Positions 620 through 6,929 of a stretch of 56,556 nt of DNA are shown piece after piece. This stretch comes from Octopus sinensis (taxonomy: Eukaryota): contig NW_021833697.1 of NCBI RefSeq assembly GCF_006345805.1, positions 1 to 56,556 on the forward strand, written 5' to 3'. The stretch's first letter is position 1. Each line of letters begins with the position of its first letter. The position numbers were made by a program, and so were the translations under genes. Under the pieces are notes generated by a model that saw only the letters and a list, made by a program, of their open reading frames with translations, had not been told where the DNA came from and did no database searches.

Positions 620-1290
620 TATAAGATAATAATTTCTCATACGTATCACAATGATAATGATTTTTTCATTTCTATGAATATATCTGTGTTCAGTATTTTC
701 AGAGAATAATTTAACACTATGTGTCTTTCGTGTGTGTTCTTGTTTAACATCTAAAATGGCAGATGTAGACTGTTAACACTTTCATAAAGTTATCCAAGCT
801 TAATTAACCAAGCAATCACCTTCACTACATTCGAAACAGTTCAGTTGTGTCAGTATTTTCAGAGAATAATTTAACACTATGTTCTTGCTTAACATCTAAA
901 ATGGCAGATGTAAACAGTTAAAACTTTTGTAAATTTATCCAAGCAATCACCTTTTTTACATTCCAAACAGTGAAGGCAACAAAAAAGTTGCTCTTAATTC
1001 CATCGTAGAAGAAATATTTTCTTATCGTTTGTCGTTGATGCGTTGATGAATGTGCCTTATGAATATATGGCCTTCCATTAATTGATGAAAGTCAATCAAA
1101 ATATCAGAGGCATGTTTAAATGAAGAGATTTCTTTAACGTCAACATGATGTGATATTCTGAAGTAGAAAAAAAGAAGCAGTGAGATAAAGAGAATGATTA
1201 AACAACATAGTAATTCAACATTGCAAATCTTACAACATCAACACTGTCATCCATTTAATGTCTATGTTTTCAGGGGTCAGATTCCATTGA
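620..1290 (-). other. Conserved ZNF 5' cassette of G1 (splice acceptor, 5'UTR, fossil fingers)
   Basis: Polypyrimidine tract plus TTCAG|AATATCAC, with AG at 1159-1158. Internal tandem duplication at about 721-838 and 850-960. Confidence 0.7.
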
Positions 1291-1359
1291 GGCTTTGAAA
1301 CTTTCACAACATTCTGTATATAGATGAAGCGTTTCCACATTTCTCTAAATTCTTACCTG

Positions 1360-1541
1360 TTTTCTTTGGTATGAAACCACCTCAATTCTGGGAAGAGGGT
1401 ATTTTCAAGTTAAAGGAAAGATGGAGACGCATTGTGCAACAAAACGGTTCATATTTGGTTGATTAAAAATGTATTGGCAAGTATTTATTGACCTTTGTCT
1501 TTCCTTCAAAAGTCGGCACGAACTTTCCGGACAACCCAATA
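1360..1541 (+). mobile_element. Mariner 3' end with right TIR
   Basis: 1362-1466 translates FFGMKPPQFWEEGIFKLKERWRRIVQQNGSYLVD*, a mariner transposase C-terminus pattern. It is followed by TIR ...GGCACGAACTTTCCGGACAACCCAA and TA. Confidence 0.8.
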
Positions 1542-1807
1542 CATATGCAATAATACGTTATACTAGCAGAATCGTTCACATGCCGAACAAAATGCATAAC
1601 AGCATTTCGTCCGTCTACACTCTAAAAGTTCAAATCCCATCCAGGTAGAATTTGGCTTTCATCCTTTCGAGGTAAAAACAAACAAGAAACATTAGCGCAC
1701 ATTGTTCCATGGAAGCGACGTCCGATTCTTCCGCCAATTTTCTGAACTCGTGTCTAAAGTACAAAAAATTATTCTCATCAACACTATTATTATTATTATG
1801 ATAGGCT

Positions 1808-2038
1808 AAGGCGGCGAACTGGCAGAAACGTTAGCACGCCGGGCGAAATGCGTAGCCGTATTTCGTCTGCCGTTACGTTCTGGGTTCAAATTCCGCCGAG
1901 GTCGACTTTGCCTTTCATCCTTTCGTGGTCGATAAATTAGTACCAGTTACGCACTGGGATCGATGTAATTGACTTAATCCGTCAGTCTGTCCTTGTTTGT
2001 CCACTCTGTGTTTAGCCCCTTGTGGGTAGTAAAGAAAT
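1808..2038 (+). mobile_element. tRNA-derived SINE (family A) inserted in an (ATT)n run
   Basis: A-box/B-box-like head (TGGCAGAAACGTTAG, GGTTCAAATTCC) and central CCTTTCATCCTTTCG..GTCGATAAATTAGTACC block. About ten copies occur in the window. Confidence 0.8.
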
Positions 2039-2169
2039 ATATTATTATTATTATTATTATTATTATAGCGACCCCGAAACGAAGGAAACTCCTGACTGAA
2101 AATACGGCCGAGGTCGACTTTGCCTTTCATCCCTTTCGGCAAATACTGGGTTCCATATATTCGACTTCG

Positions 2170-3730: not shown

Positions 3731-3959
3731 TTTTTATTAGGAAAATGGGGCGAGAAACCCCTATCCCGGTATCGTTGGAATTATTTTTATTCTCGTTTAA
3801 TGATTTATGGTGACCACCTTATGTGCCACGAAACACTTTTGGGGGTGTCGAGAAAACGGGGTATGGTGTGGGTGGAACCAACGGAAATTTCACCCTCCAA
3901 CCATTTTTCATATATTTTAAAGCTTTCAATGCCTCAATGAACCCCGACCCCTGCAGATA

Positions 3960-4468
3960 TTGACATTAAATGGATGACAGTGTTGATGTTGTAAGATTTG
4001 CAATGTTGAATTACTATGTCGTTTAACGATTCTCTTTATCTCACTGCTTCTTTTTCTATTTCAGAATATCACATCATGTTGACGTTAAAGAAATCTCTCC
4101 ATTCAGATGTGCCTCTGATATTTCTATTGACTTTCATCAATAAAGAAGACCATATATTCATAAGGCACATTCATTAATGCATCAACGACAAACGATAAGA
4201 AAATATTTCTTCTACGATGGAATTGATAGCAACATTCACTTGTCTTCGCTGTTTGGAATGTAGAGAAGGTGATTGCTTGGTTAATTAAGCTTGGATAAAT
4301 TTACAAAAGTTTTAACTGTTTACATCTACCGTTTTAGATATTAAGCAAGAACACACACGAAAGACACATAGTGTTAAATTATTCTCTGAAAATACTGAAC
4401 ACAGATATATTCATAGAAATGAAAAAATCATTATCATTGTGATACATATGAGAAATTAGTATCTTATA
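3960..4468 (+). other. Conserved ZNF 5' cassette of G2
   Basis: TTTCAG|AATATCAC acceptor at 4063-4064. A candidate 58-nt intron GTTAAT...TTTTAG ends at 4337. Confidence 0.7.
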
Positions 4469-5692
4469 ATGAATGATTTAAGAAAACCAAACAAACCTGA
4501 TTCAGGTGAGAGGCCATATCACTGTGATATCTGTGGTAAGTCATTCTCTCAAAGAGGTTCCTTGACTAGCCACATACTTACACATACAGGAGAGAAGCCA
4601 TTTCATTGCAATACCTGTGATAAATCATTCTCTCAAAGTAGTTCCTTGACTATTCACGTACGTACACATACGGGAGAGAAGCCATATCATTGTGATATTT
4701 GTGGTAAATCATTCTCTCGAAGTGGTGTCTTGTTTAGACACAAACGTACACATTCGGGAGAAAAACCATATCATTGTGACATCTGTGGAAAATCATTTTC
4801 TGAAAGTGGCCACGTGACTAGGCACAAGCGTACTCATACAGGGGAAAATCCATATCACTGTGATGTCTGTGGTGAATCATTTTCTCATAATAGCTCTTTA
4901 ACTTATCACAAACGTGTGTTCATACAGGTGAGAAGCCATATCATTGTAACATCTGTGGTAAATCTTTCTCTCTAAATAGTAACTTGACTAAACACAAACT
5001 TACACATACAGGAGAGAAAGCATATCGTTGTGATATCTGTGGCAAATCATTCTCTAGAAATAGTAACTTGACCAGTCACAAACATATTCATACTGGGGAA
5101 AAACCATATCATTGCAATATCTGTGGCAAATCATTTTCTCAAAATGGTACCTTAACTTGTCACAAACATACACATACAGGAGTGAGGCCATATCGTTGTG
5201 ATATCTGTGCTGAATCTTACTCTCGGAGTGATGCCTTGGCTAAACACAAACTTTCACATACAGAAGAAAAGCCATATAAATGTGACTAGTCACAAACGTA
5301 TTCATACTGGAGAAAAAACCATATCCATGTGATATCTGTGGTAAATCATTTTCTCATAATAGTGATTTAACTCGTCACAAACATATTCATACATATCATT
5401 GTAATATTCATGGTAAATCTTTCATTCAAAGTGGTGAGTTGATTAAACGCAAACTTACACATACAGGAGAGAAAGCATATCCTTGTAATATCTGCGGTAA
5501 ATCATTCTCTTGACCAGTTACGAATGCATAACAGTGTCATATCTGCGGTAAATCATTCTCTCAAAAATCAATTTATCTAATCACAAACTTATTCATATAG
5601 GAGAGAAGCCATATCATTGTAATACCTGTGGTGAGTCATTCTCTCAAAAAGGCCACTTAATTACACATTTGAATATTCATACACAAGTGTAA
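4469..5692 (+). pseudogene. C2H2 ZNF G2, multiply disrupted
   Basis: Five fingers, then a 2-nt GT insertion near 4917, further fingers at 4984-5289, internal deletions and frameshifts at about 5280-5560, and the family terminus HTQV* at 5690-5692. Confidence 0.85.
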
Positions 5693-6135
5693 CCGTATGA
5701 ATATCAAAATTATTACAACATACCAATTAATGAATATTTTGTCTGCTAAAAGACAGGGTTTATTCCTCTTCAAGCTTGACATTATCAACTTCAGTTTCTT
5801 GGATGTCAACATGAAATTCATGAATCACAACTTCAATATCATTTATATATCTAAATATATCAACACAGAGATGACTTTGGTTTCTGGAGAGGATTGTGCT
5901 GGATTTTTGAGGAATTTGTTATGTGAGAATAAAGGAATGGGAATAAGGAATAAAAGTTTTGACTGACATTGATTTTGTCTTTGTTGTGTTTTCATCATCA
6001 TCCTCTAACATCCATTTTTAGCATCCGTTTTCTATGCAGGCTTTGATGGGAAAGTGTGATATGAGCTGGCAAGCCAGAGTGCTGCTCCACGTTCCTGTCA
6101 GATTGGGCTTGGTTTCTTTGGCTCTATGCCTTTAA

Positions 6136-6357
6136 CCCTTTCAATACCAACCAAGCTGAAACCTGCTCTGGCTCTGTTGTACAAGTGTCTTGTTATCATA
6201 AATTTTGAATTAAAATCTTCCACGAAACCTCAGTCACAATTTATGTTCCTAACACTAGCTTAACAATAATGAAGTTATTTTACTAAATTCTTTGTTATAT
6301 TTAAAATTAATTGAAAGAAACACAGAGCATCTCAACAGAAATATGGTAATGAAAGGG
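6136..6357. mobile_element. piggyBac-type MITE
   Basis: TTAA|CCCTTTCAATACC...GGTAATGAAAGGG|TTAA. The paralogous flanks of G3 and G5 show the empty single-TTAA site. Confidence 0.85.
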
Positions 6358-6929
6358 TTAAGATACATGGCGCATTTTATAAATATTCCTGTTCAAGAAT
6401 CATAACAGTATCAAACATGTAGTAGCGCTTTCAGTTGTGTATTTAATTTGATATATGTATTTGTGTGAACATGATATCAGTCTGACAACTAAAATAATAG
6501 AAATCTTGTATTTTGAGTATTTTTTTCATATGAGTCAGAAGCATGGACTCCCTTCTACGAAGAAATAGAAAAACTAAAATTTTTTCGCATGTGGTGTTTG
6601 CACCACAACATATGCAGCAAAATGGCAAGATAAGACATTAAATGTAAAATCTTAGTAATATGGACTCATTTGCTTACAGCCAATAATATCTCACCATGAC
6701 CTTGTTGTCAAGTTAACGAACATACTCTACCAAATAAACTCAAGATGAAGAAAGGTGTTGTAAGTCGACTGATCACCAAGTTATGCCACATTTTAAAAGG
6801 CGACAAGTAATTAGATTTGCATCTATACCTGTTATCAGGGAAGTTAAGTTAATTTTTTGGCTCAAAAAGCGAAAAGCAGGGCCATGTAGGGGGACATGGA
6901 GTTATGTACAGGGAGGGTGATCATGCCAT

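Follow-up and report, generated by a model that had tools for sequence, protein, structure and literature searches.

In this study, we analysed a 56,556-bp contig of Octopus sinensis (the whole of which is termed the window here) that carries eight C2H2 zinc-finger genes, G1 to G8, on strictly alternating strands, and found that one of them, G2, is a true mosaic in which a head of the type present in G5 is joined to a body and 3′ flank of the type present in G4 and G6. The explanation that we consider best, with a probability of about 0.68, is that G2 is a decayed hybrid paralogue that arose by old ectopic homologous recombination between finger arrays, and that the cluster also holds a second, inverted copy of a module made up of a G5-type head, a spacer and a G6-type gene. 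A sequence-only reading of the same DNA had attributed the mosaic to a crossover between inverted arrays that flipped the spacer between G1 and G2. Our analyses retain the exchange between inverted arrays, but not the reciprocal G1/G2 flip.

G2 joins a G5-type head to a G4/G6-type body

Neighbour-joining trees with bootstrap were built separately for the 5′ flanks and for the proximal 3′ flanks, a check that the sequence-only reading had itself called for, and the two were discordant in their placement of G2, with bootstraps of 100% and 98%, respectively. In the 5′ flank tree G2 pairs with G5 (100%, at 96.1% identity) and G1 pairs with G6 (100%, at 96.7% identity). The flank sequence that G2 and G5 had been said to share is readily traced, as 4240–4359 is identical to 28524–28643 of G5 at 120 of 120 positions, and the 20-mer GGGGTCGGGGTTCATTGAGG occurs only at 3932–3951 (−) and 28935–28954 (+). 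A single 14-residue leader is common to G1, G2, G4, G5 and G6, and the degenerate first finger TEETV, which is present in G1, G4 and G6, is absent from both G2 and G5.

The 3′ end of G2 groups with G4 and G6, as had been claimed, and on this point trees, identities and an inserted element all agree. In the proximal 3′ flank tree G4 and G6 pair at 98% and G2 is their neighbour (95.1% identity, compared with 91.7% to G5), and G5 pairs with G7 (100%); from 5993 on, 15 of 108 positions are fixed differences between G2/G4/G6 and G5/G7. The distal 3′ flank of G2 is 96.6% identical to that of G6, 96.3% to that of G4 and 88.7% to that of G5. The inserted element is a piggyBac-type miniature inverted-repeat transposable element (MITE) which, in accordance with the earlier claim, occupies the same TTAA site in G2, G6 and G4, a site that is empty in G3 and G5. 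In G4 it is present as three tandem copies (22251–22992) with 17-bp linkers, each with TTAA. Of the sites at which G2 matches only one of G5 and G4, the 5′ flank has 35 for G5 and 8 for G4, and the 3′ flank has 7 and 20, respectively (Fisher p = 5e-6).

Between these flanks, the G2 finger series reads QRGSLTS, QSSSLTI, RSGVLFR, ESGHVTR, HNSSLTY and LNSNLTK. Fingers 2–6 had been proposed to follow G4 fingers 5–10, and they do so, matching G4 units 5, 6/7, 8, 9 and 10 at 77, 79, 73, 80 and 71 of 84 positions, respectively, against a between-gene background that averages 63 and reaches 74 at its 99th percentile. The G4 unit order (QSSSLTI, RSxxL, ESGH, HNxSLTY, LNSNLT) is also kept in G2. G2 finger 1 matches G5 finger 3 at 74 of 84 positions, but four other fingers give 72–73, and with a margin of 1–2 matches of 84 this assignment was rejected as evidence. 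Because finger 1 is ambiguous, the junction between head and body is only bracketed, to about 4530–4610; the crossover had been placed at 4600–4620, and of that claim the position inside the finger repeats stands, but not the precision. The reading frame and the 84-nt register are unbroken over 4469–4917, that is, across the junction.

The spacer between G1 and G2 is an inverted copy of the spacer between G5 and G6, as had been noticed from the sequence, and is collinear with it in three blocks at about 93–96% identity. In the block next to G2, 3880–4540 is 95–100% identical to the reverse complement of 28335–29005 in each 120-nt window. The mariner fragment that G1 and G6 had been reported to share lies within the 839–1794 block that both genes have. 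At about 1330–1480 (frame +2) it encodes 43 residues that matched residues 302–344 of Mos1 transposase chains among solved structures, with E values that vary by chain from 3e-4 to 5e-4; these are the last 43 codons of the transposase, the element’s end is also present, and a Pfam search of this short piece returned no match. For the remaining block, which we term element X, the BLAST identity of the two copies is only 84% because of three indels; judged by substitutions it is about 93%, and the low BLAST value was rejected as a sign of separate origin.

The segment private to the G1–G2 spacer contains a dispersed repeat (2747–2950) and a second inverted arm of element X (2985–3352). A local palindrome is present at 2397–3352, with X arms at 2397–2696 and 3012–3352 that are 82% identical overall and 91–96% identical in blocks, and with the dispersed repeat, which has at least five further copies in the window, in its loop. 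Since element X and the dispersed repeat also adjoin at 52740–54924 and 15956–17776, both may belong to a single transposable element.

Evidence on the extent of the module was obtained from Octopus vulgaris. Homology searches with full finger arrays yielded nothing more specific than generic zinc-finger proteins at 35–60% identity, and a query with the leader alone returned one O. vulgaris protein, encoded in a zinc-finger cluster (L004) that we rejected as the orthologous locus; it is a paralogous cluster in which all genes are on the same strand. At its positions 11097–13411 this cluster carries element X, the short interspersed nuclear element (SINE)-like repeat, the G6-type flank and the gene as a module that is 91% identical to window 2448–839, with the SINE-like repeat at the same junction of flank and element X as in O. 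sinensis. Therefore, the module reaches about 2.4 kb upstream of its gene and moves as a unit. A truncated gene of 73 residues in the same cluster carries the same leader. As the genes of this cluster lie on one strand, strand alternation is not universal in the subfamily.

The two spacer copies differ by ~4%, in addition to several private insertions and deletions, including a 131-bp tandem duplication in the G1 promoter and 14- and 15-bp deletions in the G6 promoter. In its tail G2 shows 95% identity to G4 and G6, the latter two are 97–98% identical to each other (97.8% over body and flank), and the copies of the spacer module are about 96–97% identical. On these identities the G2 tail lineage is older than the duplication of the module, and a tail that was already separate at the time of copying is consistent with replacement of the head on a resident gene. 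G2 is a pseudogene whose frame is shifted by a 2-bp insertion near 4917 and changes twice more further on; it also contains truncated units and in-frame stops. Judged from these divergences and lesions, the event is old and fixed, and its product is now broken.

Origin of the mosaic and rival explanations

The head of a minus-strand gene joined to the body of a plus-strand gene points to homologous exchange between inverted arrays as the natural cause. We propose that an exchange between a G5-type array and the oppositely oriented array of a resident G4-type gene, rather than that of G1, fused a G5-type head (5′ flank of 590 bp, leader and first finger) to the resident body, in frame and within the 84-bp repeats of the fingers. 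The left end of the cluster would have received the second, inverted module (G5-type head, spacer and G6-type gene) through the same rearrangement or through a duplication before it. This module runs on the G1 side at least to the end of the contig and ends on the other side within the first one or two fingers of G2. G1 is accordingly a copy of a G6-type gene and not a reciprocal product. The route may have been a single-step inverted duplication via inverted repeats; alternatively, a tandem duplication may have come first and then an inversion that took in more than the spacer. G2 has since decayed to a pseudogene. Non-allelic homologous recombination had been named as the default explanation, and ordinary ectopic recombination between arrays is likewise what we favour.

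Several points weigh against this explanation. What remains of the G1 array lies to the left of the contig start, together with the 3′ flank of G1 and the second junction, the left boundary of the inverted copy falls beyond the sequence covered, and the evidence for the G1–G2 region comes from one assembled contig of one species. The finger-level signal is weak past G2 finger 6, and finger 1 is assigned without confidence. In addition, a reciprocal product could have existed and been erased by conversion afterwards, and one G1/G2 conversion patch is visible.

It is unlikely, though conceivable, that gene conversion alone was at work, with the heads of G1 and G2 as ordinary tandem genes being overwritten from G6 and G5, respectively, without any inversion or inverted duplication. 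Conversion patches are present at the locus. The proximal promoter copy of G1 has a short G3-like run (771–789) followed by 100 nt (643–742) that match G2 4346–4445, in reverse complement, at every position, and this patch includes a 9-bp deletion that is in no other paralogue. Because a perfect run of 100 nt is improbable by chance at an arm identity of 89% (0.89^100 × ~600 starts, roughly 0.005), the patch probably represents arm-to-arm gene conversion. The 5′ flanks also group by head-to-head pair, with G7 and G8 joined at 100%. Moreover, a 3′ stretch of ~250 bp (5735–5990 and its counterparts), beginning ~40 nt past the stop codon, is 97–100% identical in G2, G4, G5, G6 and G7, compared to only 75–90% for the coding sequences of these five genes; this stretch could be a conserved element of the 3′ untranslated region or a result of homogenisation. 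Against conversion alone, the whole 3.8-kb spacer is collinear in inverted orientation, including the non-genic mariner tail, the SINE junction and element X. A tract covering both heads and everything between them would be a duplication in all but name.

We give little credence to a reciprocal crossover between G1 and G2 near 4600, in a direct duplicate of the G5–G6 pair, by which the promoter-bearing spacer was flipped and the N-termini were swapped. Such an event would yield both an inverted spacer and a G2 with mosaic head and body, and the arms of the inverted pair do interact, as indicated by the promoter patch and the shared 9-bp deletion. A single reciprocal crossover cuts each parent once, however, and therefore G1 would be expected to have a G6-type head on a G5-type tail. 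This complementary mosaic was not found in the visible part of G1, 618 coding bases in which there is no switch to a G5-type tail. Instead, G1 and G6 are 96–97% identical over the first 380 nt of coding sequence and, after one extra unit, collinear thereafter. Units 1–3 of the two genes match at 81–82 of 84 positions, every visible finger of G1 is of G6 type or G4-like, and 1.2 kb of its flank is G6-like. A flip at the G5–G6 pair instead was also considered and rejected, since the G5 tail (fingers ENSNFT, RSGSLT, RNSQLT, LNSDLT and RNSDLT) is unlike the visible tail of G1.

The finger series of G1 (TEETV, QSSSLTR, ESGHVTM, QSNDLFR, RSSHLSD, HNSSLTN, ...) adds to the case against a reciprocal flip. 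A homologous block, QSSSLT / ESGHVT / xSxxLF / HNSSLT, is present in both G1 and G2, with matches of 73–77 of 84 that fall within the top 0.5–2% of finger identities between genes, and the reciprocal flip fails because one parent cannot give the same finger block to both products. G1 and G6 further share a derived order, with ESGHVTM ahead of xSxDLFR, that G2 is without; the body of G2 is in the G4 unit order, not that of G6 and G1. Rescue of the reciprocal flip would require extra events.

There is only a very slim chance that G2 is an assembly artefact, produced when reads from the G5 and G4/G6 loci were mis-joined inside the repeats. Such a suspicion could be raised by a contig that is unplaced, begins within a finger array and repeats a segment also assembled on a chromosome, but G2 is 4–5% diverged from each of its supposed parents and has private frameshifts and deletions, whereas hardly any difference from the source loci would be expected of a mis-join. 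Virtually no weight can be given to active programmed switching, in which repeated inversion of the spacers in soma or germline would shuffle fingers in the manner of a shufflon, as only the alternating architecture (every spacer is invertible in principle) speaks for it, and against it stand the lack of a recombinase and of defined sites, the 4% divergence and private insertions of the copies, a product that is a pseudogene, the short tracts of perfect homology in the arrays (the longest being 57 nt) and the collinearity of three assembled copies over the G7–G8 spacer and the G6 side of the G5–G6 spacer.

Ectopic recombination between arrays, the explanation that we prefer for G2, has parallels elsewhere in the window. 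G6 (31425–32437) is itself a mosaic of head and body, being 96–97% identical to G1 until finger 3/4 and 95–97% identical to G4 from there on, with the switch at about 31720–31780. Two segments, 20869–27745 and 31456–39592, form a direct duplicate of 7–8 kb whose blocks are 88–97% identical, in most cases about 95%. It begins within the arrays of G4 and G6 and extends to about 30 nt beyond the G5 stop codon. As a rule, breakpoints at this locus lie within finger arrays or next to them. G5 and G7 have their 3′ flank in common (up to 96.7% identity) and not their coding sequence, and G7 has 436 extra bases (39592–40027) between its stop and the shared flank.

A wider and more tentative proposal is that head-to-head pairs of octopus zinc-finger genes act as small palindromes whose inverted arms recombine repeatedly over evolutionary time. 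We regard this as possible rather than likely, and keep it alive because patchy arm-to-arm conversion is visible. Potentially, non-crossover events would homogenise promoters, and crossovers or template switches between inverted arrays would move modules of promoter, leader and first fingers to other bodies. If this were true, strand alternation would add a germline route of domain shuffling to tandem duplication, and three of its products would be present in the 56-kb window, namely G2, G6 (with its G1-type head and G4-type body) and the promoter patch of G1.

Gene layout, assembled copies and repeats

Table 1. Features of the G1–G8 cluster and of a related O. vulgaris locus. Positions refer to the window unless another record is named; rc, reverse complement.
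Feature	Position	Strand	Remarks
Contig VCDQ01008377.1	Octopus sinensis GCA_006345805.1		56,556 bp, unplaced; start falls inside a finger array
G1	1-619, ATG at 619	-	C2H2, G6 type; cut by contig end; leader and 6.7 finger units
G1 proximal promoter	620-839	-	second copy of 131-bp tandem duplication (620-971); not G6 type
G6-type distal 5′ flank of G1	839-1794	-	95.5% to rc of 30388-31356
SINE-like repeat, then (ATT)n run	1794-2044	.	junction of G6-type flank and element X; many copies in window
Element X, copy collinear with G5–G6 spacer	2054-2696	-	rc of 29032-29725
Segment private to G1–G2 spacer	2697-3879 (1.2 kb)	.	dispersed repeat, second inverted X arm, repeat-rich sequence
G5-type 5′ flank of G2	3880-4468 (590 bp)	+	96.1% to G5 versus 88-90% to G1, G4 and G6
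G2	4469-5692	+	C2H2 zinc-finger pseudogene
G2 leader and finger 1	4469-4606	+	head/body junction in about 4530-4610
G2 fingers 2-6	4607-5027	+	G4 type, G4 order; 2-bp insertion near 4917 shifts frame
Decayed 3′ array of G2	5028-5692	+	last finger 5618-5680, stop 5690-5692; two frame changes
Proximal 3′ flank of G2	5693-6135	+	includes TTAA target site; 95.1% to G4/G6, 91.7% to G5
piggyBac-type MITE	6136-6357	+	ends CCCTTT...AAAGGG; TTAA duplication 6132-6135 / 6358-6361
Distal 3′ flank of G2	6362-6662	+	G4/G6 only; homology stops at 6662
G3	10785-9481	-	C2H2 zinc-finger gene
G4	20586-21806	+	C2H2 zinc-finger gene
G4 fingers 5-14 and 3′ flank with three MITEs	20976-23281	+	closest relative of G2 body
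G5	ATG 28405, stop 27774	-	C2H2 zinc-finger, disrupted
G5 head (first finger, leader, 5′ flank)	28270-29005	-	counterpart of G2 3880-4606
G5–G6 spacer remainder	29005-31424	+	element X, private 663 bp (29725-30388), G6-type flank with mariner tail
G6	from ATG 31425	+	C2H2 zinc-finger, disrupted
G7	41248-40028	-	C2H2 zinc-finger, intact product
G8	48970-50891	+	C2H2 zinc-finger, frameshifted
L004	O. vulgaris OX597842.1, 23,508,035-23,528,256		zinc-finger cluster at locus positions 5001-19358, one strand

The genes of the cluster consist of tandem C2H2 fingers with TGEKPY linkers and gave Pfam matches to zf-C2H2 and zf-H2C2_2. At least four of the eight (G2, G5, G6 and G8) are disrupted: finger 1 of G5 has lost 1 nt, and G6 has TAA codons in linkers at about 32220 and 32305 as well as a frameshift before its last finger. 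Database records of the exact product were found for G7 only, with none for G4, the open reading frame (ORF) of G2, three start variants of G3 or a repeat-derived ORF, and an Rfam search of the window returned no match.

The same locus has been assembled three times, in VCDQ01008377.1, in chromosome CM016885.1 and in contig VCDQ01005315.1. The three copies are collinear and 99.6–99.9% identical over 29561–51257, the only range to which the comparison of orientation applies, with no inversion of the G7–G8 spacer, and they differ there by one unit of a 476-bp tandem repeat, the chromosome copy being one unit shorter. This repeat (three copies, 96% identity) and a 73-bp tandem repeat (11 copies, 99% identity) are at 36007–37439 and 13941–14742, respectively. 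The G7–G8 spacer contains a foldback-like element (43458–45380) with 620-bp inverted arms that are 96.8% identical; a copy in the O. vulgaris cluster (locus positions 166–2081) is 97.8% identical to it, and the element is probably a young transposable element.

A consensus splice donor, TTCAG|GTGAGA, forms the end of the leader (4499–4511, 31455–31467 and the other leaders). One recorded gene model of 441 residues runs from an upstream ATG of G6 (31404) to the G8 stop (50891) via long “introns”, and another, of 1146 residues, covers more than 21 kb of the chromosome copy. Both of these long-intron models look like annotation mis-joins owing to the repeats.

Comparison with known systems

The sequence-only reading had likened the locus to a shufflon. 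In the shufflon of plasmid R64, new termini are produced by site-specific inversion between coding segments of opposite orientation, and the likeness extends only to the idea that an inversion can make new C-termini or N-termini. The octopus locus is without a dedicated recombinase or short sites, and the event was a eukaryotic germline one that was fixed long ago. The absence of a visible recombinase, which the same reading had remarked upon, was upheld, since no non-finger ORF of at least 120 residues has a Pfam match; all window ORFs of this size are zinc-finger genes or lack a match, and the sole trace of a transposase is the C-terminal mariner remnant of ~50 residues. Short conserved inverted crossover sites were likewise not found, and the junction falls among generic finger repeats of 84 bp; the inverted arms of G1 and G2 are 83% identical over 669 nt, and 57 nt is the longest exact inverted match inside the arrays. 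Together with copies that are ~4% diverged and a G2 that is a pseudogene, these results led us to abandon the term shufflon-like.

Closer likenesses exist to two kinds of rearrangement between inverted repeats. In human genomic disorders, inversions and inverted duplications arise via inverted low-copy repeats, by non-allelic homologous recombination or template switching. These resemble the octopus locus in having two inverted homologous blocks, a junction in the repeat, a hybrid copy and an inverted duplicate segment. They differ in that the octopus homology is short and consists of finger arrays that are 75–85% identical, instead of extended repeats with hardly any divergence, and in that the second junction is outside the window. 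In the palindromes of primate sex chromosomes, arm-to-arm gene conversion and inversion of the spacer occur. The clustering of the 5′ flanks of octopus head-to-head partners (100% for G7 and G8) and the 100-nt patch of G1 and G2 are reminiscent of these large palindromes, although the octopus arms are only about 83–89% identical overall and their homogenisation is patchy.

The C2H2 zinc-finger expansion of coleoid cephalopods is among the largest known, and to our knowledge the diversification of its members has been little described. A paper on cephalopod C2H2 genes does not discuss orientation, gene conversion or recombination (PMC12513265). Our results indicate that new octopus zinc-finger genes arise by swaps of head and body modules at array breakpoints, besides copying and point mutation. 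This finding has practical consequences, as gene trees for C2H2 families need to be built per module and annotation pipelines mis-join such genes.

Among the closest known systems are the hybrid and mosaic paralogues of mammalian KRAB zinc-finger clusters, for which descriptions exist of crossing-over that is unequal, of gene conversion and of the “drifting and shifting” of finger arrays (PMC5363842; PMC2443715). Vertebrate KRAB/C2H2 clusters and the octopus cluster have in common tandem poly-finger genes, breakpoints inside the 84-bp repeats, gain and loss of fingers, frequent pseudogenes and abundant transposable elements. In contrast, the octopus genes are without a KRAB exon and their strands alternate, making inverted as well as direct exchanges between arrays possible. 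Many of the products die; therefore, the octopus locus fits the birth-and-death picture of vertebrate KRAB zinc-finger genes, and no new mechanism is called for. Because crossing-over, conversion and array shifting have already been described for those clusters, G2 is to be filed under known processes, as a well-resolved new example of the birth-and-death evolution of zinc-finger clusters and not as a new system.

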